Below, piece after piece: positions 4,401 through 64,000 of a stretch of DNA of 64,000 nucleotides. The stretch's first letter is position 1; every line of letters begins with the position of its first letter. Source of the DNA: Eutreptiella sp. 'Long Island Sound 2002' (taxonomy: Eukaryota; Protista; Euglenida); the NCBI GenBank assembly GCA_964036045.1, contig OZ038378.1, forward strand, positions 166,780,001 to 166,844,000, given 5' to 3'. The translations under genes and the position numbers were made by a program. The notes beneath the pieces were generated by a model. That model saw nothing but the letters and a program-made list of their open reading frames with translations, had not been told where the DNA came from and ran no database searches.

Positions 4401-5399
4401 AGCCCCATGGATAATTAAATTAAATAAATTGAATTAAACTAAGTTAAATGAGTACCTCAAGGCGGCCTCAAAAAAACAAACTCTAGCTAAGGAACACACG
4501 CGGTGGGTTAGGTGCAATCACCATAGCAGTACGTATACCCCCCCACCCCACCCTTGTCCTTCTTGTGGCAAAACTAAGGCTATTGCGAACCTTAGGTTAG
4601 AGAGGCCTGTTTATTGTAGATTGTGGAGGAAACAAGCAAGATACAATGCACATTGATCTTTTGACGTGGACACAGAGGACGTCAGACAAACCATGAAGTA
4701 GGTCATGGTGGCGGAGATCCTAGAATCCATTTGCCCAACTATGCTTGCAACAATAATGGGAAGGCAAAACATTGAGGCGACAATTCAAACGGTAAATGGC
4801 AACTCCATGTTGTTTGCTCAAGCATTAATTTTTCGCCCAATTCGTTAACGAACACACCACTTGGCTTTGGGAACAGAGGGTGTAGGATGGGCTGGCAACA
4901 TAACACTGTGTGGAAAGAGCCGGCAAAGACAAACCGGGGCACAAAGCGTAGCCCAAGCTGCTAAAAAGCCAACAAAAAAATGCACGTACGGCACGAAGTC
5001 GCCCGTCCGTACAAGTATGGGCCGGAGGTGGGTGGGGGGGGGGGGGGGGCTACCCCAGCATTTCTTTGCCAAGAAATGATATCACATAGTGTTTCCTGTA
5101 TAGTGTTCCATCTAGTGGTACTTGGTACATGCCATGGGGAAGGGGGGATTGCGGTATGCCCAATAAGAAGAAAAGGCTTTCTTGTGCTCTTGTTGTAGTA
5201 GGAGGTGCAAAACAAGAACGTGTGGCAATCAAGGTCTGGGCACCACTCTCAAAATGGGGAGAACCAACTACCATAACAAGGCATCGGTTTGTGTAGCATA
5301 GGATGGTTAGTCATTGATGCGTTGCAAGGAGAAGATGTGTGCCACTATGGGGAGGTGGGGAGGCTAAAAAAAATTGTCCACACATAATATTCCACGTGC

Positions 5400-7290: not shown

Positions 7291-7565
7291 TTCATTCATT
7301 CATTCATTTTGTGGCAGCTTAGGCCTTGCTTTGCACAATGCTCACATGCGTCGAAAGCATCGACCAAGCCTTGATAGCGAAGCAAAGACACAAAGCAAGC
7401 GTTCTCAAATGGCCACACCGAGTTAACGAGGAGACCAAAGGCACAAACAAACAATTATCTTCGTGGATTCCATCTTGTAATTTCAAGATTTGCATTGACA
7501 TCTAATGCCATCGCCGATGTCTAGCACTCCACGACGCAAACAGATCACCGAGAAAGGGCACATAC

Positions 7566-7684: not shown

Positions 7685-8673
7685 CTGCAAATGAAGCACA
7701 CAAACCCACGACGTGGCTCAACAAACTATGACACATGTGCGAGCACGATGACGACCAATTTGCTCCACTACCTCGCATGGTGCATGCAAAAATCGCTTTT
7801 TAGGGATTGTGATTGGTTGGGAAGCAAATTCTCACGGTACGAGTTTGGGGACGAGGCGCTCCGCAGATCGCGGATTGCGGACCCACCCCCCACCGGCCGT
7901 GTGGCATTGGATCGTGGAACAACCCTTGACCCCCTACCCCCCCTCCCCCAAAGCCCCCTTGGTACCTAAGGCGAAAATTTGAAGCCCACCAAAACCACCC
8001 AAAAGTAGCACAAGCTCCCATAACATGGTCCGATGTGATGTACCATGTTAGATATTATTAGTATGCACGATGCATTCTTGTTAAAAAACAAGTCCTTCCA
8101 TACTCGTGCACGGGAAAGAAGCCCGTTTTAGATAAGTACACTGTATAGCAGGCGGTCTGCCGATCCAAAGCCCGCCTGAAGTGATATGTAAATGGTCCAA
8201 TGGTCCGCGGATCACCGCCACCGAACCCCCCGCTCCTCCCCCCGACCGCCTAACCTTTCGGATCAATCCGATCCAAATCATCAAGGGCAAAACAATACTT
8301 CACACTCCTTGCCTAACTCATGGTGGTTTCGAAGATGTCACCTCTTTTGCAACAAACAACATTGGGGTACGTTGAAACGCCGAGAAAAGACATCGGTAGC
8401 AACAATTGAACAATGGATTGAATATTTGCATAGCGCAACAGCGTGTCCACGAAGGGTCGACGCAATGCATCTAGTTCGCAATGCATCAACGCACGGCACA
8501 AAACCAAATCAAGAAGAAGCCGAAAAACACAAGGAAAAGAAAAAAAAGCTTCAAAAACCAATGCACATAAAATGGTTTTTTGGTCGTTGGCAACACAAGA
8601 AGACGCAAGAAGATCAACAAAGTTAGTATGATGACCCTCCTCGGGGTTCGCGTAAGCATGAGATGGGGCACAC

Positions 8674-8932
8674 CATTGTGCGATAAGTCACACATGGTGA
8701 CCGTTTCGTTGGATTGTAATTCATTCACGATGTCGAGCAATTGTTGCAAACCAAGTTGAGATCGGGACAAGTCCAAACTCGCTTTGCTAAGCGCCGCGCA
8801 GTGCCTTGATGAGGTGTTCGAGAGACGAGGAAGTTGAGCTTGCCATAAGTTTGCCTTGTGGGAGTCTTGTGAGGGAGACCTTTTCGGGTTGACGGAACCG
8901 TCACCAATATCCATTGATAAGCCGCGTTGCAT
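8674..8932 (-). CDS. Upstream exon of the same RNI-like LRR gene (5' limit uncertain)
   Basis: ALSKASLDLSRSQLGLQQLLDIVNELQSNETVTMCDLSHNG|gtgtgc; the phase-1 donor matches the acceptor at 7684 (989-nt GT-AG intron). Confidence 0.55.
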
Positions 8933-9499
8933 GGTATGGTGTTGTTGTCGTTGCTAGAATTTCGACATTTGCTGCCTCAAAACAAACCATCAGATTTGAG
9001 CGAAAGGTGGACAAATCGAAGGTCCCACGCCTCTTTTAAAACGATACACTACTTCAAGCAACTTCGAAGCACAAGGAGCAGATCCAAATCTTCCAATCGG
9101 CAAAAGCGCTGGTCCACAGTCAAATGGGTTGGGAGCAGGACTATGATTGCCCTGCACTGAATGAAGCTGTGTCAACATGTACTGCAAGTGCAACAGGCCC
9201 GTGGCGTGAGAACATTTACAGGCTGCGCGCGCTTGAAACTCTCGCGAAAACTGGTGTGCCGCCCGGTGACGGTATGCAGACTGCGGCCCTAGCAGACTGC
9301 GAAAGACTGCGCGCGAACATGCGACACGCGCATTTACGACAACCGAAAAAACGACTGCAACTGATCTACTGCAACTGATCTTCTGCTAAAAGGCGACAAG
9401 GATGTTTTGAACCGTTCTGCAGCCCAAATTTATAAAATTATTTTACTCTACTGCAACAGATTATTTTATCGCCAGATAAGGGAACGATACCTTACTGGT

Positions 9500-10421
9500 A
9501 AATCCACTCCCTCCTACTCATTTTCAACTCCCTCCTACTCATTTTCAACTCCCTCCAAGTCAAAATCCACTCCCTCCTACTCATTTTCAACTCCCCCCTG
9601 CTCATTTTCAACTCCCTCCAAGTGAAAATCCACTCCCTCCTACTCATTTTCAACTCCCCCCTGCTCATTTTCAACTCCCTCCAAGTGAAAATCCACTCCC
9701 TCCTACTCATTTTCAACTCCCTCCTACTCAGTTTCAACTCCCTCCAAGTGAAAATCCACTCCCTCCTACTCATTTTCAACTCCCTCCTACTCATTTTCAA
9801 CTCCCCCCTGCTCATTTTCAACTCCCTCCAAGTGAAAATCCACTCCCTCCTACTCATTTTCAACTCCCTCCTACTCATTTTCAACTCCCTCCAAGTGAAA
9901 ATCCACTCCCTCCTACTCATTTTCAACTCCCTCCTACTCATTTTCAACTCCCCCCTGCTCATTTTCAACTCCCTCCAAGTGAAAATCCACTCCCTCCTAC
10001 TCATTTTCAACTCCCTCCTACTCATTTTCAACTCCCCCCTGCTCATTTCCAACCCCCTCCAAGTGAAAATCCACTCCCTCCTACTCATTTTCAACTCCCT
10101 CCTACTCATTTTCAACTCCCCCCTGCTCATTTCCAACCCCCTCCAAGTGAAAATCCACTCCCTCCTACTCATTTTCAACTCCCTCCTACTCATTTTCAAC
10201 TCCCCCCTGCTCATTTTCAACCCCCTCCAAGTGAAAATCCACTCCCTCCTACTCATTTTCAACTCCCTCCTACTCATTTTCAACTCCCTCCAAGTGAAAA
10301 TCCACTCCCTCCTACTCATTTTCATCTCCCTGCTGCTCATTTTCAACTCCCCCCTGCTCATTTTCAACTCCCTCCAAGTGAAAATCCACTCCCTCCTACT
10401 CATTTTCAACTCCCTCCTACT
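9500..10421 (+). repeat. 21-bp-unit subterminal minisatellite, left arm of the MULE (~44 units, 3 main variants)
   Basis: Units ctcctactcattttcaactcc, ctccaagtgaaaatccactcc and cccctgctcattttcaactcc. Reverse-complement units occur at ~13217-13270, 13375-13545 and 13895-13970. Confidence 0.95.
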
Positions 10422-56511: not shown

Positions 56512-58201
56512 TGAGGGGAGGAACGAGGGGAAAGAGGTAAAGGGGGGCGGATGGGCAGTTCAAGGGCAGCAGGAGTAGCATCCATGGACCTGGTCCGCTG
56601 TGCGGTGGTGCCCACGTCTATGATTTCGATTCGCCCATTGCGTCAGCACAAATCGTGCGCGTTACAAGACAGGGCACGAGATCGAAGGTCATGCAGCGAT
56701 GCATCCCAGTGGGGGCGTGGAGCCAGTGCTTGTGATAAAAGGGCACCTTGCGCCCAAAGAAATGCATTCTGTACGTTTTCAGCGATTCAGCCATTAGCCG
56801 GGCTCTTTTGTCATTTGTGGCCGAGCGGCGGGGGGGGGGGGGATCAAGCCCCGAAAATTGCGAGGGCGCATTGGGAAAGGGGCGGACTCATGTCATGTTT
56901 TGACCCAGAAAACTGATTTCCCCCGCGCGGTTCTTGATGCAGGCGTACGCCCGGTAGAATATGGGGCCTACTGGACCTTTGAGATACCACGTACCCCAGT
57001 TCCAATATGTTCATTGGTAGTGTCGCCACAGCACGAAGAGCCACAGCGCAGATGCAGCACAACAACACACAGCCACAGAGGCCGGAGTCGGACAGCTCCG
57101 CGCGGGACCCAGCGTGGCACATCACCGAGATTTGTCTGTCTGCCCCAGCGATTTAGGGATTGGTACGCTCCAATAAAAGGGCATGTGCCGTCGTGGACAC
57201 CTCAGAGGTGCACTCCGGATTAGGAAAGGCGTGCAACCCTACCGGAGTGGCAGTGTTGAAGGACCCTCGTGGAATGTAACCATTGTTGGCTCTTGTTGCT
57301 ACCTCGCAGCACTTGTTGACCCCTGTTGACACAGGAACCCAAGGCATGGTGCCCACACAGGGGTTGGGGTGCATGCTTGGGAATGGCACAGGGGAGGCTT
57401 GGCACACCAAGAACTACTATTTGGGTGCTGGATTGTCATATGTCAAGCTAACTACAAAAACTGATGTACCGATGTCTTGTCAAGCCTGGCTACTGGGACC
57501 ATGCAGGTTTGACAACTGTTGGCATTTTCAGTATTGCACGTTGCACTGCACTGCAAACTGCACGCTCTGCAATTGTGGGGTGCACACTACACAAATAGAC
57601 CTGATTCAACAACACATTTTTTTTCAATGTTGTGGGTACACTAGGATGTCCTCAAAGGGCAACTTGCATATGAAACCCCATGGCAGGAACGTGCGGCACA
57701 AACAAAGACATGCACAACACAGGCATAACATGCACAAAATGACCATGAAAGACTATATTATGGTGTGCGCTTTAGGGTATCGTAGAATGGACTCCATGTG
57801 TCGCTTTTTGGCTGGAGTCTTTGACCTTGAAGAATCGAACGTGCAACCAGCATGGGCTCACTTGCACACCCCAAATAGCTCAAAGAAAAAGGCATTTTGG
57901 CCATTTATAGCATATTTTGAGACCAGAGTCCGCCACCTGCAGCATCCGTGCCCGCCTGCCATCATTCACTTTCTTACCCAATTTTTGTAGGAATCAACTT
58001 CATATATCAAGGTATCATCCGTCAAAATTTGGGAGGGAACGGTACAATTTGCGCGTGTTGCTTGCTGCTGCTGCTCGCTGCTTACTAAAAGGGGTAGCTC
58101 CACCCCACGCCTTTAAAAAGGGTTAATGAAAGCCTCATTGGTTAACCTAACCCACCCTCATCGCCTACCACGAAGTCAGGTTCAAATCAGGCTACAGCCA
58201 C

Positions 58202-58591
58202 ATGTGCCAGGTTGCCCGCATGGCGCCTCAGTACCAACCTATCACGCACACCGCCAACAACCCTGACGTGATCTTCCTGGTCCACCGCAGCATTGCCCAA
58301 TACACGCACCTGCTACAACCGGCCCACCCATGCGGCGTAGCCGTCGAGGTATCTCTCCCCGACCGCCCATCTTTCAGTGCGGCAAACATACATGGTCCCT
58401 TTGATCAACGGTCCCGCACGTCACTGGACCATTGGATCGGCCAGCTCCCGCGCCTGGGGCTGCTGATGGGTGATTTCAATCATGGCAAAGAGTCGGTGTG
58501 GCCCCGCGATAGACCACTGCGCTGGTGGCACCACAAGCTGCTGGACGGCACCCTGCTTGACCCGGCCAGCTGCGTCACGACGGACATGAAC
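58202..58591 (+). pseudogene. N-terminal half of the LINE APE endonuclease
   Basis: NIHGP, GDFN and LLD motifs; homology and GC-rich composition end near 58580-58592. Confidence 0.8.
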
Positions 58592-58626
58592 CCATGTTTA
58601 TGCAATAAACATAAGTTTAATTCACT

Positions 58627-59961
58627 GTGCACCTCGTCTGTATCTTAGACTCACTGAGTTTTTGGTTTTTTAACCCCACGTGGGTCACTGCATGCCTGAG
58701 CCAAGTCGCACGATTGGAATTAGACAATAACGGAAAGGCAGACAGTGAATTGCAACAGGCGCATCCTTCTGGGCCAAATTCGAGGGCAGCACAGATCACG
58801 GACGACGCACAGCGTGAACAAGCAGTCATCGCGCTCCGAAAATGGCGCCAGTGGACTGAAGGCCCGTACGCAACCCTCGTGGGGAAAGGACTGCACAAGG
58901 AGGAAATAGCGGAGTGGGCAGTGCAGCTGGAGGAAGACATGGTAGAGCAGGAGGTCCCAGATGGAGCTGTCGGCGCGCTGTGCACCAGAGCGGGACTCCA
59001 GCACCTCGAAAAGGACGAAGCCATCGCAGCTCTTGCGGTGTACCGTGTGCGAAAGAACCTCCAGCCCGACTTCCTCAACGGCACCTTTATCGAGTGGAAG
59101 GACGCCACGAACGCAGGCGGCGAACCGGGAGAACAAGAAGGAGCGGCACGCGAGGCGATTACCACACCGAGCCCGGGGCAAGGGGAATCTGGAGTCGCAG
59201 CATTCCATGAACTCGTAGCCCGACTGGCTGCAGCGCGTGTGGAGAACGACGCACTACGCAAAATATTGGTGCCCCAGCTCAATGAAGAGGCACTGAACAA
59301 ACTGCTTGGTGAGCACCTCCCATACGCCTGGATGGGAAGTTTACTGACAGGCCTGAAGTCCTATAAAGAAAAAAACGAGCAGTGGTTCACTGAGGAGCTG
59401 GCAATTCTAATCTGGAACACTGTCAACGAGGAGCTGAGAGCGAAGCGGCAAGGCATGAAGTCAACGAACCCCCAAAACCAACCCCAGGGGATGCAGATGG
59501 TCCCTCACCAACAGGGAGGCGCCATGGCGGGAGGGGGTACAACTCTTCACACCCCCCCAGGCAATTGCTTTAAATGCGGGGGGCCTGGCCACTGGGCTAC
59601 TAACTGCCCCCTCGCCACTCAAAGGCGGGGGGGGAGGGTTCAAATGATGGGACAGCAGCAGGTCCTAGTCTCGTCGAAGGGGGTCGCATTCGATATGGCT
59701 GGCCCCCCCCCTGGCCAGTGTCGTGTCTGCGGGGGGAACCACTGGGAACAGTACTGCCCGCATGCGAACCCCCAGGGAGTGCCACAGATGTTCCAAAGCG
59801 CCACAGGAAATGCAGCACAACCCCACCCCCAGCAATCCTTTCAGGGTGCCAGTCCACCCCCCGCCGCGGAGGGAGTCCCCCAATTCCCCAACGCGCAGGC
59901 CCAACAACACATGCAGTCCATTTACAGAGAAATGGGGTTCCAAGTTGGAAACCAGGCATAG
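58627..59961 (+). CDS. gag: Gag-like protein with two zinc knuckles (true start uncertain)
   Basis: CFKCGGPGHWATNC (CX2CX4HX4C) and CRVCGGNHWEQYC (CX2CX3HX4C); predicted coiled-coil central region; Gln/Pro-rich end; TAG at 59959-61. Confidence 0.85.
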   Translation: MHLVCILDSLSFWFFNPTWVTACLSQVARLELDNNGKADSELQQAHPSGPNSRAAQITDDAQREQAVIALRKWRQWTEGPYATLVGKGLHKEEIAEWAVQLEEDMVEQEVPDGAVGALCTRAGLQHLEKDEAIAALAVYRVRKNLQPDFLNGTFIEWKDATNAGGEPGEQEGAAREAITTPSPGQGESGVAAFHELVARLAAARVENDALRKILVPQLNEEALNKLLGEHLPYAWMGSLLTGLKSYKEKNEQWFTEELAILIWNTVNEELRAKRQGMKSTNPQNQPQGMQMVPHQQGGAMAGGGTTLHTPPGNCFKCGGPGHWATNCPLATQRRGGRVQMMGQQQVLVSSKGVAFDMAGPPPGQCRVCGGNHWEQYCPHANPQGVPQMFQSATGNAAQPHPQQSFQGASPPPAAEGVPQFPNAQAQQHMQSIYREMGFQVGNQA

Positions 59962-61972
59962 GGGCACGCGGGGGGAGGGTCAGGCAGTGGCACCGTGTAC
60001 ATGGCAGATGTGTCCGTCGCCATACGAACATACTTCTCCATTTCGTCCGATGAATGGTCTGACGGCCCACTGCAACTGGCAGCAAGGGCGATTACATCAG
60101 GATCCAGGGAAGCATACATGTCTGCCCTCCGTCAGTTCGCCAAAAACAGCGAATCATCCGATACTCTTGAGGTCGCACTCAACAAGAGAATCTGCGCAAT
60201 CGCCAGGCGAAAGCGGGGTAGATCTGCAGCAACCGGACTGGTGTCCGCGCTCCGAGTGCTGGAGAAACTCAGGCTCTTACCCCCTTCAGTCCTCCAACTC
60301 CACTGGCTGCAAGTGGAGGCCATTGCACGCATCACAGCACCCCATGCCCCCCCGAGACCCTACGGTACGGCACAACACCTCGAGTTCCTCGGCAGGGCCC
60401 GTATCCACTGGGCGTGGCCCCGCCTGTTCTTCCTCGCGACTTGCGCAGTTGTCTTCAGAATGCGTAGCGGGGATTCGGAAAGCGTCTCGTGGGAAGGGAT
60501 CACCACCCCTGGGTGGATCGAGTTTTTCGATGAGAAACGTGGAAAAGAATGGGTGCAGTACCCACTCTCGCCCTTCCTTGAACAATGGAGGAAGTACGTA
60601 CTATCCCTTAAGCACCCCAACACCCCCCCCCAAAGCCCAGTCCTGCCAGGTGGCAGGAATGCACTGCGCAGCATCCAGAAAGAGTGCATGCAACACTGCC
60701 CCCTTGGGCACATCACATGGCATCCATGGGCACGCATGGCTGCAGCTGCATTCAGGATCCTGGGAGGAAAACTGGCCAGCCTGGCAGACTGGGGAAGGTG
60801 GAAGGACCTCAAACAGGCCAGGCACTATGCCAAGGCACCTGCAGACTGGTCCCTGCCTGAGTTCCTCTCCCTACCCTACCCTGAGAGCTTCACAGGCTTC
60901 CCTTCACGCGACATGGGAGGGGTATCCATCAGAACAAAAGATGTCTGGCCAAGGGAGGCCTGGGAAAAGCGAACAGGGCCCAGGAAACCCCCGCCGAAGC
61001 CAGCTCCCGAATCCGTCAAGCGCCAAAAGCCTCGGGGCACGGCCGGTGAAAACCGGGGCGCGAAGCCAAACCAGTCTGACTCATCTGAAGACTCCTCCTC
61101 TTCCGGAGACTCCTCAGATGAGGGCATGGAAGTGGACGAGGATACCACAAACCCCCCCCCACCCCCTGATGTGGCCGACGCCGGGGCAGGCACCACTGAA
61201 CCCGCTGCTGCGACAGCCCCCACTGAGGGAAGCAAAAACTGCCCCATCGTCCTGGATGACCCCAGAGATGGCATCGCCCCCCCCAAAGTGGGCCCCACAA
61301 GTCCTGATGCGGGGCGACCAGACGAGGGGCTCGACGGGGTGGCGGGGGAAGGAGCAGTTGAGGCAGAACCCACCCCAATGGTCGGCCCCAGAGAAGCGGA
61401 TCCCCAACCATCGGAGGGAACCACCACTGCAGACACCGGTTCCTCACTGGCCCCAGGGGATGGATGTCTCACGCCACAGGCGCAGATACGGTCAGGACCC
61501 CCCCCTGCAGAAAGAGCAATGGACAGGCCCCCCTCCCCCACCCCCCAGACCCCACCCCCAGCCCCCCCGAGAGGGCCTCAGGGCATGCCCCCCCCCCCCC
61601 CCCCAGACTGCCCCGAGGGCAGTCCCAGCCCAGGCAGAAAACGCCCACACAAGCGACTTTTTGCCCTCGACAAGCGCCCCCACGTGCCCAGTGGTGAAAC
61701 ACCGTACCCAGCAGACAAGGTACCGATGGTACAGAATCCGCTGCCCCCACCTGAGCCACGAGACACGGCACCACACAGTGGCTATGACGTCTGTGCGCCT
61801 ATGCGGCACGGACGTTTCCTCCACTGGGTACCAGGACAAATGCTACTGCCAGCTCCTGGAGAGGCACCATGGCCCGATGATAAAGAGGATCGTGACCAGC
61901 CGACCCCGAATGATCACGACAACGGATTGTGCATGCAGGGGTGCCAGGGGTGCAGGAGAGAGACAACATTAA
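59723..61972 (+). CDS. Overlapping +1-frame ORF (749 aa from GTG; stop-free from 59669), S/P/R-rich, no recognised domain
   Basis: Open for 768 codons across the gag 3' end, the gag stop and the whole YR region. It terminates at TAA 61970-72, at the inferred right junction. Confidence 0.45.
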   Translation: MSAGGTTGNSTARMRTPRECHRCSKAPQEMQHNPTPSNPFRVPVHPPPRRESPNSPTRRPNNTCSPFTEKWGSKLETRHRGTRGEGQAVAPCTWQMCPSPYEHTSPFRPMNGLTAHCNWQQGRLHQDPGKHTCLPSVSSPKTANHPILLRSHSTRESAQSPGESGVDLQQPDWCPRSECWRNSGSYPLQSSNSTGCKWRPLHASQHPMPPRDPTVRHNTSSSSAGPVSTGRGPACSSSRLAQLSSECVAGIRKASRGKGSPPLGGSSFSMRNVEKNGCSTHSRPSLNNGGSTYYPLSTPTPPPKAQSCQVAGMHCAASRKSACNTAPLGTSHGIHGHAWLQLHSGSWEENWPAWQTGEGGRTSNRPGTMPRHLQTGPCLSSSPYPTLRASQASLHATWEGYPSEQKMSGQGRPGKSEQGPGNPRRSQLPNPSSAKSLGARPVKTGARSQTSLTHLKTPPLPETPQMRAWKWTRIPQTPPHPLMWPTPGQAPLNPLLRQPPLREAKTAPSSWMTPEMASPPPKWAPQVLMRGDQTRGSTGWRGKEQLRQNPPQWSAPEKRIPNHRREPPLQTPVPHWPQGMDVSRHRRRYGQDPPLQKEQWTGPPPPPPRPHPQPPREGLRACPPPPPQTAPRAVPAQAENAHTSDFLPSTSAPTCPVVKHRTQQTRYRWYRIRCPHLSHETRHHTVAMTSVRLCGTDVSSTGYQDKCYCQLLERHHGPMIKRIVTSRPRMITTTDCACRGARGAGERQH

Positions 61973-62268
61973 ACTCCCCACTGCTCACCACTCGGAAAGG
62001 AGTGCGCCTAGATGCGATCCTCGTCTCCGACACAATCTGGCACGCATTGACTCCCACAGGGTGCTCCACTCGCACCTACCCATCCGCCGGTGACCACAAA
62101 GCAGTGGCGGCAATCTTTGGCTCTGCCATCCAAGATGGATCCGACCACCGGGAGTACACTGGTTTCCGTGCAACACTGGCACACGAGCACCTTCAATACA
62201 TTTCAGAAGCACATGACCAAGTGGTCTCGGCAGACGACCCTGTCCGGGTCCCCACAGGAGCGGTATGA
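59995..62268 (+). CDS. DIRS-class tyrosine recombinase (core ~60080-60830) with a long acidic/Pro-rich tail, running in frame into the LINE APE C-half
   Basis: SGSREAYMSALRQF (SAM-like N-domain), FRMRSGD (R), FFDEK (K), WHPWARMAAA (HxxR box variant), WGRW, ARHY (Y nucleophile position). Confidence 0.85.
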   Translation: MYMADVSVAIRTYFSISSDEWSDGPLQLAARAITSGSREAYMSALRQFAKNSESSDTLEVALNKRICAIARRKRGRSAATGLVSALRVLEKLRLLPPSVLQLHWLQVEAIARITAPHAPPRPYGTAQHLEFLGRARIHWAWPRLFFLATCAVVFRMRSGDSESVSWEGITTPGWIEFFDEKRGKEWVQYPLSPFLEQWRKYVLSLKHPNTPPQSPVLPGGRNALRSIQKECMQHCPLGHITWHPWARMAAAAFRILGGKLASLADWGRWKDLKQARHYAKAPADWSLPEFLSLPYPESFTGFPSRDMGGVSIRTKDVWPREAWEKRTGPRKPPPKPAPESVKRQKPRGTAGENRGAKPNQSDSSEDSSSSGDSSDEGMEVDEDTTNPPPPPDVADAGAGTTEPAAATAPTEGSKNCPIVLDDPRDGIAPPKVGPTSPDAGRPDEGLDGVAGEGAVEAEPTPMVGPREADPQPSEGTTTADTGSSLAPGDGCLTPQAQIRSGPPPAERAMDRPPSPTPQTPPPAPPRGPQGMPPPPPPDCPEGSPSPGRKRPHKRLFALDKRPHVPSGETPYPADKVPMVQNPLPPPEPRDTAPHSGYDVCAPMRHGRFLHWVPGQMLLPAPGEAPWPDDKEDRDQPTPNDHDNGLCMQGCQGCRRETTLNSPLLTTRKGVRLDAILVSDTIWHALTPTGCSTRTYPSAGDHKAVAAIFGSAIQDGSDHREYTGFRATLAHEHLQYISEAHDQVVSADDPVRVPTGAV

Positions 62269-64000
62269 AGCCATTTTCCATGAAATTCACCAATTTGTCC
62301 AGAACCACCGGCCTAAGCCGCCCGAGGTAGACGTCAAGGAGGAGCAGTTTAGGACGGCCTGCAAGTACGCCCCCCACATCTCAGCGTGCACTGAAGGACT
62401 GGGGCGACTACATGGGCAGAAAGCAGGCCATTGCGTCGCACAAGGCATTACGCCGGTTCCACAAGTCTGCAATCAAGTCCGCCCGAACATTCTACCAGGA
62501 CATGAAGGTCTGGATGCACACCCCGTTCCAAATGACGCAGCCTCAACCCACAAAAGAGTCCATGGCAAAGCATTTGCCTCACTTCGCGGGAGATCCACCC
62601 TGGGATCCCGAAGTCATGTGCTCACTCCTACGCCAGTCGCTGACGCCCCAACCCGGCTTCCGAACCACCGCCCCGACATGGGACCAATTCTTAAAAGCCC
62701 TGGGGCGACCCAAACGGAAAGCGGCAGGCCCGGACGGGATCGCACCCCACCTCTTGGGATGGCTGCCACCTGCCCTCCAATGGGAGTTGTGCCTGTGCAT
62801 AGTAAGCGCCTGGAACACCGGGATCATGCCGAAACAGTGGAGCACGTCGCGAGTCACCCTCCTATACAAAAAGGGCTCCCCCACCTCAGCACTGAATTAT
62901 CGGCCCATATCCGTCTCCGGCTGCATGTACACCCTCTTTGCCTCACTGCTGCTACAAGCCATGGAACGGCCCCTCAATCAAGCGTTATCGCCAGAGCAGG
63001 CGGGAGCACGCAAAGGCCACACCACCAGCGCACAGGCACTGAACCTCTGGTCCACACTGCTCCAAAAATGACAATCCCAGCTACGTATGTTTGCTTGACG
63101 TCGCCAAAGCTTTCCCCAGCACACCGCACGCCGCCATCCTGCAAGCCCTCCACTGTATCGGTGCCCCGGCGCATCTCCTCCAGCTGGTCGAACAGATCTA
63201 CCAACGGCCTATCAATCAGTGCGGCGGACTCACCTACAGGGTCCACAGAGGCATCAAAGAAGGGTGCCCCCTATCTCCGGCCCTTTTCACCTTGGTCTAT
63301 CAGTCTTTCCATGGGACCTTGCAGAGAGAGTTCCCTGACGTTGATTTCTTCATCTATGTTGACGGACATAGCTTTCATCGCCAGGTCCGAGGCCGAACTA
63401 CAGGCTGTCCTCCGCCGAGTGCAGGAGCTCTCCCAGCTCCTCGGCTTCAAGATCAACCACTCCAAAACAGAGGTCATCCACTGGGCCTCCCGCTATCGGA
63501 AGCACCAAGTGCACTGGGCTGGCCACACCATCACTGCCTCCCCGCCATTGTTCAAATACCTGGGCCACCTCATTGCGCATCCCACCATGCTGCAGGCAGC
63601 CAGGGCGGACATCCAGCACACCGTCCAATGTGACTTGGCCAGATACCGCACACTGCCACTCGATGCCTTCGAGCGCACCCAGTTACTGTCCTCGGTGCTC
63701 ATGCCCCGATGGGTATACCGCTCACTCTTCGTGGCCAGCGACCACGTGCTCCACGACATTGACATGATGGCCCGGGAGTTCGTCACGACTACCAAAGGGG
63801 TGGAGCGGCGCCACCATGTCCTCCATCTCACCGACCCGGTCTGCCAGGGTGGCACAGGGCTCCACCAAATGTATTGGGCATTCCGCTGCCGCTACATCAC
63901 TTTGCTCCAAACTGCGCTCCGTGACCGCCACGGCAAGGTTCGGGCAATTGCCCCCGCCACCGCCCCCTTCAGCATCCCGCTCCACCACCGGTACCGCCGG
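62231..64000 (+). pseudogene. LINE reverse transcriptase region with four +1 frameshifts
   Basis: Frame moves +1 at ~62230, ~62370 (C run), ~63066 (A run) and 63364 (GAC g GAC inside YVDD). No internal nonsense codons seen in the reconstructed path. Confidence 0.85.

Follow-up and report, generated by a model that had tools for sequence, protein, structure and literature searches.

The tyrosine recombinase (YR) and reverse transcriptase/RNase H (RT/RH) open reading frames (ORFs) of DIRS-order retrotransposons frequently overlap extensively (PMC6681497). Long overlaps between YR and pol were found in half of 28 annotated DIRS1-like elements, which have inverted terminal repeats plus an internal complementary region and whose catalytic YR domain lies outside the overlap; VIPER and Ngaro elements are usually without ORF overlaps (Piednoel et al. 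2011, PMC3266345). PAT-like elements of this order are known in chlorophytes (PMC8226300, PMC3266345). Here, we analyzed a DIRS-order element in a stretch of 64,000 nucleotides from Eutreptiella sp. 'Long Island Sound 2002' (assembly GCA_964036045.1, contig OZ038378.1, positions 166,780,001 to 166,844,000), referred to below as the window, in which a gag-like ORF and a YR ORF are accompanied by a reading frame, +1 to both, that stays open for 767 codons. Comparison with related copies indicates that this frame very probably derives from pol, the RT-RNase H ORF of a tyrosine-recombinase retrotransposon, and represents what is left of its 5' leader; in the window copy, it is an inherited, non-functional relic.

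The family shows the features expected of the DIRS order, including a tyrosine recombinase, RT and RNase H (in loci L001 and L005-L010, with RT identified by RVT_1 and YLDD and the RNase H motifs read by eye; both are deleted in the window copy), and the absence of a target-site duplication. Its organization, A1 - gag - (in-frame stop) - YR - RT-RH - B1A2 - B2, is VIPER/TATE-like. As in the VIPER/TATE elements of kinetoplastids (PMC6681497), a gag-like ORF is followed by YR and then RT/RH, the split direct repeats are arranged as A1 ... B1-A2-B2, there is no methyltransferase, and truncated non-autonomous derivatives exist, such as SIRE for VIPER and the window copy here. The host, on the other hand, is a GC-rich photosynthetic protist or alga rather than a kinetoplastid, and whereas VIPER usually has no ORF overlap, pol in the present family overlaps the entire YR gene. 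DIRS1-like elements share with it the long YR/pol overlap, the gag, YR, and RT-RH content, the lack of target-site duplication, and a 3-bp junction, but in the present family the overlap takes in the whole catalytic YR domain, the repeats are of the split direct kind, there is no methyltransferase, and pol terminates immediately behind RNase H. Ngaro and PAT-like/kangaroo/TOC3 elements also have split direct repeat termini but differ in YR placement: in Ngaro (gag, RT/RH, YR), YR follows RT/RH, whereas it precedes RT/RH in every lineage examined here, and PAT-like elements carry a methyltransferase. The element is therefore a variant arrangement within a known order, namely a complete overlap of YR by a pol leader without sequence constraint. 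In the protein atlas, the RT-RH has clusters with the label Euglenozoa as its neighbors, a feature-based lead only.

The open frame and its continuation in relatives

The features needed for the argument are listed below in window coordinates.

58589 to 61974, + strand: non-autonomous copy of a DIRS-order (tyrosine-recombinase) retrotransposon with an internal deletion, flanked by AAC at both ends and lacking a target-site duplication
58627 to 59961, + strand: gag-like ORF, with a CCHC zinc knuckle at 59566-59607 (Pfam zf-CCHC, 3.4e-06) and a second knuckle at 59719-59757, ending at TAG 59959-59961
59669 to 59961, + strand: overlap of gag and the pol frame (98 codons), the interval where ribosomes would need to change frame
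59669 to 61972, + strand: +1 frame, 767 codons plus TAA, with 59669-61890 the probable 5' leader of the pol (RT-RNase H) ORF and 61891-61972 a read-on into repeat B
59962 to 61890, + strand: tyrosine recombinase ORF in the frame of gag, with a two-domain YR fold at 59995-60990 followed by a P/G/A/D-rich tail
61891, + strand: deletion junction, where L001 diverges after ...GAGGATC; L001 7904-9679 is missing from the window, and a full-length relative has RT-RNase H, then B1, A2, and spacer here
61891 to 61974, + strand: terminal repeat B, matching L001 B1 (9679-9762) and B2 (9973-10058)

Gag and YR share one frame (mod3=1) and are separated only by the TAG at 59959. In the mod3=2 frame, the last upstream stop is TAG 59666-59668 and the next is TAA 61970-61972, leaving 767 sense codons from 59669 to 61969 that overlap the final 98 codons of gag, cross its stop codon, and span about 670 YR-frame codons. 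This agrees with the original prediction, made from the letters alone, of a frame without stops that bridges the end of gag; the prediction also placed the end of the frame at the element boundary, correctly so because the closing TAA sits within TTAAAC, the last six bases of repeat B. Its hand count of about 35 NTG and about 9 NTA codons in the YR frame, none of them creating a +1 stop, needs correction: an exact count over 59962-61974 gave 42 NTG codons, of which indeed none is followed by A, and 12 NTA codons, of which the final one alone has A as the next base and creates the terminal TAA. The product is P/S/R/T/G-rich (P15 S11 R9 T8 G8 %), in keeping with the S/P/R-rich protein without RT motifs described earlier. 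Neither this product, nor its last 110 amino acids, for which a homology check had been proposed, nor the pre-RT part of pol gave anything significant in Pfam and PDB sequence searches, and the product used as a homology query returned only frame-mosaic ORFs of the same assembly.

The identity of the frame became apparent from its relatives, among them the loci L001-L010 with one contig from a JGI metagenome (L009, 36% recombinase identity); a protein search with the recombinase frame found relatives in one ENA assembly only. In L005 (P0010, a 94% copy), the tail of the +1 product of the window (...VAMTSVRLCGTDVSSTGYQDKCYCQLLERHHGPMIK...) forms one ORF with RT, and the frame is likewise unbroken into RT in L006 (P0011, 75% RT identity), L007 (53%), and L003 (about 45%). 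In L009, at least 890 codons form one uninterrupted ORF, which begins 19 codons before the PPP motif of gag, spans all of YR, and reaches RVT_1 at amino acids 754-883, after which the contig ends. The pol leader over YR in intact relatives extends for 550-860 codons before RT and RNase H. Because leader and RT are one ORF in these relatives, the +1 frame of the window can be read as the 5' leader of pol, its RT-RH continuation being hidden in this copy by the loss of 1,776 bp at 61891. Window 58589-61891 corresponds to L001 4603-7903 at 99.3% identity, plus the B repeat of L001; after this match, L001 shows in order the 1,776 extra bases, a match to window 61891-61974, a second match to window 58589-58664, a spacer, and a further match to window 61891-61976. 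The extra bases carry an RT-RH ORF (8004-9659) with RVT_1, the YLDD motif, and RNase H motifs. In the window, reading on past 61891 adds 26 codons of repeat B before the TAA of TTAAAC.

Selection on the open frame

The missing +1 stops had been thought hard to put down to GC content alone, and synonymous permutation supports that view. Synonymous codons were shuffled 20,000 times, keeping the protein and its codon usage, and were also shuffled within 100-codon blocks. For the YR frame of the window, 11.1 stops in the +1 frame were expected (standard deviation 2.3, minimum 2 in 20,000 shuffles) versus 1 observed, and 7.0 versus 0 with block-wise shuffling. A similar depletion of pol-frame stops over YR was found in L008 (0 observed, 8.2 expected), L009 (0 and 8.7), L010 (0 and 10.5), L003 (1 and 9.4), and L002 (0 and 3.5), and in the older copy L005 (3 and 13.3). 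The +1 frame is held stop-free by selection, and this recurs in six lineages down to 29% YR identity. With the pol frame taken as the reference, the YR frame was equally depleted (1 stop versus 20.6 expected and 4 versus 14.6), showing that both frames are kept open.

A chance or compositional origin in GC-rich, T-poor, low-complexity sequence would be conceivable for the YR tail, which is P/G/A-rich and T-poor with an AT skew of 0.3-0.39 and shows 1 stop versus 5.0 expected in the window. However, the depletion is present in the globular YR domain alone (0 stops versus 6.4 expected in the window and again 0 versus 6.4 in L008), persists under block-wise shuffling, and recurs across the six lineages. 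The +2 frame over YR in the window holds 25-27 stops, at expectation, as it does in all lineages except the L008 tail (0 stops versus 6.1 expected), and gag upstream of 59669 has 14 stops in the +1 frame versus 12.4 expected; the depletion is therefore not an effect of composition. Across the family, gag controls were at expectation in the +1 frame, and RT-region controls had 10-16 stops, at expectation or moderately below it (L002, 10 versus 16.9, P 0.003; L008, 10 versus 15.5, P 0.023). A purely compositional origin is refuted by the shuffles and retains next to no probability.

What is selected was approached by comparing L008 with L002 and with L003, at about 30-35% nucleotide divergence, using position-specific divergence and three-frame identity, which were preferred over codon resampling as less model-dependent. 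Over the YR domain, divergence at YR codon positions 1, 2, and 3 was 0.26, 0.19, and 0.51 for L008-L002 and 0.20, 0.12, and 0.50 for L008-L003, close to the values of the non-overlapped RT in the same pairs (0.28, 0.22, and 0.58, and 0.24, 0.16, and 0.54, respectively). The reduced variation at YR-synonymous sites that an overprinted gene would impose was thus absent from the YR domain, with third positions at 0.50-0.51 as compared with 0.54-0.58 in RT. Over this domain, the YR frame keeps an amino-acid identity of 0.68-0.76, as compared with 0.40-0.42 for the pol frame and 0.38-0.41 for the unused one, although the latter has 3-5 stops and the pol frame has none. The amino acids of the leader thus drift over the YR catalytic domain as they would in a non-coding frame, and only the absence of stops is selected there. 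In the YR tail, all three codon positions diverge at 0.4-0.5. The exception to this sequence-free selection is a stretch of about 32 codons at the 3' end of the leader.

61762 to 61857, + strand: 32-codon island with both a conserved YR C-terminal GYD..PGP.PLP and a pol-frame RLG...D.C[HY]C[QH]

Across five lineages, identity at positions 1, 2, and 3 of this island is 0.64, 0.65, and 0.57, versus 0.2-0.4 in the flanks, and amino-acid constraint in the second frame was detected here only. The expectation of the original prediction that family copies would share both an open frame and reduced synonymous variation is thus supported in its first part across lineages and in its second part within the island alone.

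These results bear on the proposal that the frame is maintained for the function of a separate, overprinted accessory protein, which would be S/P/R-rich and end in a Cys/His-rich segment. Selection on openness is real, and both the clearly open frame and the island, with its D.C[HY]C[QH] motif conserved near the 3' end, could be taken in favor of such a protein. However, the frame does not end in intact relatives but runs on into RT-RH, its sequence over the YR domain diverges as a non-coding frame would, it has no Pfam or PDB match, and its last 26 codons and stop in the window are a read-on into the terminal repeat made by the deletion. We therefore consider an accessory protein highly improbable. 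Nor is the frame evidence of an undescribed system, as had been suggested, since the overlap is with the RT-RH frame, the case that the prediction itself had named as normal for such elements. The cassette lacking RT and carrying a mystery protein was a false lead, and the copy is what a deletion has left of an ordinary YR retrotransposon.

Gag and the tyrosine recombinase

Pfam and PDB sequence searches alone gave nothing significant for the YR ORF, and its identity rests on family and structural comparisons. An exhaustive search found 180 YR relatives, of which 27 were aligned; R157, K181, W242-H243, and W269 are conserved in this alignment, giving the pattern R-K-H-R-W(-Y), and 7 of the 27 match PF00589. 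The family profile matches Cre (7e-4) across the HxxR...W...Y region. An AlphaFold (AF2) model with a predicted local distance difference test score of 92 matched Cre and lambda integrase over both domains in Foldseek (E=6e-07, template modeling score 0.57-0.63, 314 columns). Together, the conserved residues, the family profile, and the modeled fold identify the ORF from 59962 as a real tyrosine recombinase.

Gag and YR are separated by TAG in the window, L001, and L004 and by TGA in L008, L003, and L009; in L002 and L006, a sense codon occupies this position. The shared frame with a single stop in four lineages suggests that Gag-YR may be made by stop-codon readthrough; the single stops lie at 59959-59961 in the window (TAG-G), 4535-4537 in L008, 6494-6496 in L003, and 2376-2378 in L009.

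Additional domains were seen upstream of gag in some relatives. In one lineage (L008 2199-4126; L002 5751-7058), a ubiquitin domain (PF00240, 4.7e-10) ending in LRGG is fused upstream of gag within the element and is itself preceded by a weak chlorophyll a/b-binding fragment; the element may have captured this sequence from its host, whose deubiquitinases would then cleave it off. In L009, the gag-frame ORF at 3-1300 contains two 2A-like motifs upstream of gag, DGDVEANPGP and DGDVESNPGP, hinting at co-translational separation of an N-terminal product.

How the pol frame may be reached

The likely reason for the selected openness, as far as it can be read from the sequences, is that ribosomes enter pol by recoding close to the end of gag. 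The opening point of the pol frame lies 2-19 codons ahead of one conserved gag motif, PPP..C..CG, in seven lineages, in the region of GPPP and the second zinc knuckle. We propose that ribosomes translating gag would shift into the +1 frame on the stretch from this motif to where gag ends (59669-59961 in the window) and would read through the leader to RT-RH, giving a Gag-linker-RT-RH product in which the leader would act as a disordered spacer; Gag-YR would arise alongside Gag by readthrough of the in-frame stop. The suggestion of the original prediction that the frame might be entered by frameshifting from gag is reasonable, although no shift site was found and the lineages share no nucleotide motif at the opening point. 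In the window, a run of nine C at 59703-59711 encodes the conserved GPPP. A polyproline or C-run as a general slippery site was rejected, the Pro codons differing between lineages. A comparable linker is known from hepadnaviruses, where the spacer of the polymerase overlaps preS and forms a sequence-tolerant disordered linker over a gene that bears the amino-acid constraint; this system differs in being unrelated, in having a much shorter overlap, and in that the polymerase has its own start codon.

It could be argued instead that pol is made without a frameshift, by a non-AUG or internal start, from a subgenomic or spliced RNA, or by reinitiation, with the leader translated partly or not at all. 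The lack of a slippery site or stimulatory structure and the presence of an AUG 19-48 codons after the PPP motif in some lineages (the window at 59762, L009, and L003) are compatible with this. No AUG is conserved in the pol leader, however, as L002 has none for about 480 open codons and the first AUG of L008 is at codon 269. The tie between the opening point and one gag motif also argues against such an origin, as do the 550-860 stop-free upstream codons that a start near RT would leave unexplained in six lineages. An early frame change is favored because a start near RT would need no hundreds of open codons upstream, and we regard expression of pol without a frameshift as rather unlikely.

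Entry could also be diffuse, with the whole overlap serving as a capture zone in which, at any point of YR, a rare spontaneous +1 slip, slippage during transcription, or an indel would still yield a product containing RT-RH. This would be in agreement with both frames being open throughout, with the absence of a single conserved site, and with the long mosaic ORFs that switch frames in indel-bearing genomic copies (P0004, P0005, and P0008), but it leaves the fixed opening place in gag unexplained. Spontaneous frameshift rates are low. We hold diffuse entry to be improbable, more so than expression of pol without a frameshift.

Several points weigh against a pol leader reached by recoding in gag. 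The frame is broken between leader and RT in L001 and L008; since it is unbroken there in five other copies, we attribute the two breaks to indels particular to those copies, although misassembly of the long-read contigs may have affected this joint either way. Gag and YR are in different frames in L010, a degraded copy, so that the relation to gag is not uniform. No frameshift signal, slippery site, or stimulatory structure was identified in the overlap region of the lineages compared, and the C9 run is specific to the window's family and is not conserved at the nucleotide level in other lineages. Finally, the RNA-library (metatranscriptome) contigs are short, low-depth, and patchy and may contain DNA, and were not used as support; they show no joints, and strand, RNA ends, and splicing cannot be read from them.

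With recoding near the end of gag retained as the preferred explanation, a tentative reading, to which we give somewhat less than an even chance, is that this clade makes Gag, Gag-YR (by readthrough), and Gag-linker-RT-RH (by an early +1 change) from one RNA, with a dual-frame region of 550-860 codons and a leader selected for lacking stops only. If true, the region would rank with the longest that have been described as open in two frames in a eukaryotic element, and it would be a clean example from nature of selection acting on translatability and not on sequence. The interest of the family lies in its architecture, in which a complete recombinase gene, including the catalytic domain, is contained within the leader of the pol ORF; openness and protein-sequence constraint, usually confounded in overlapping genes, could be separated here. 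The overlap points to recoding close to the end of gag in a group of elements whose expression has hardly been studied. The architecture is of moderate interest for studies of translational recoding and of overlapping genes.

The dual-open region also has a practical consequence for annotation. The gene calls P0004, P0005, and P0008 (from loci including L004 and L001) are mosaics in which YR-frame and pol-frame segments meet at indels, and these calls stay long because both frames are open. The region thereby explains the frame-hopping mosaic proteins given by gene callers in this genome and is a source of chimeric "proteins" in databases.

Structure and insertion site of the window copy

The remaining features of the element and its surroundings are as follows.

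58151 to 58588, + strand: upstream half of an interrupted host ORF belonging to a degraded non-long-terminal-repeat element of the LINE (long interspersed nuclear element) type, recognized from its translation, with the endonuclease label given from motifs by eye
58589 to 58665, + strand: repeat A (A1 copy of the split direct repeats), of which 58589-58664 matches L001 A1 and A2
58714, + strand: copy-specific extra T that, by alignment, removes the in-frame gag ATG (M-E-L-D-N-N-G-K in L001 and L004)
61975 to 63633, + strand: downstream half of the interrupted ORF, followed by a frameshifted LINE-type RT (RVT_1, 7.4e-09, at 63091-63630)

The split direct repeat pattern A1 ... B1-A2 ... B2 is present in L001, L006, L007, and L008. 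In L001, A1 (4602-4678) and A2 (9759-9835) are identical (100%), B1 (9674-9762) equals B2 (9968-10056), and a 3-bp AAC overlap marks the B1/A2 junction. Its pol ORF ends within 20 bp of B1, for which reason we conclude that the element has no methyltransferase; there was no Pfam match to a methyltransferase domain and no coding room after RNase H in L001. With RT-RH deleted and the gag start codon destroyed by the extra T, the window copy is dead. The extra T at 58714 is also missing from one RNA-library contig. No further copies of the element were found within the window by self-BLAST.

AAC is present at 58589-58591 and at 61972-61974 without target duplication, and excision of the element restores the frame of the host ORF. 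Neither half of this ORF had a Pfam match, and the LINE endonuclease label is accordingly unconfirmed. AAC is common to the insertion sites in the window (58584-58591 / 61972-61979), L004 (4597-4604 / 7497-7504), and L001 (4598-4605 / 10054-10061), and the sites of the window and L004 also share CATG before AAC and T(C/G)CCC after it. This suggests a preferred insertion target similar to the B/A junction of the element itself.

The spacer between A2 and B2 varies among copies and is a C/A-rich low-complexity stretch in L001 (9835-9973). RNA-library contigs join A to B (window 58657 and 61891) through a (GTGACC)n microsatellite, and this short A-spacer-B piece has the highest RNA-library depth of the whole element. 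Downstream of the element, at 62051-64000, a further stretch of about 650 codons without a stop is present in the mod3=2 frame; it lies over the degraded LINE-type RT, whose own motifs hop among all three frames.

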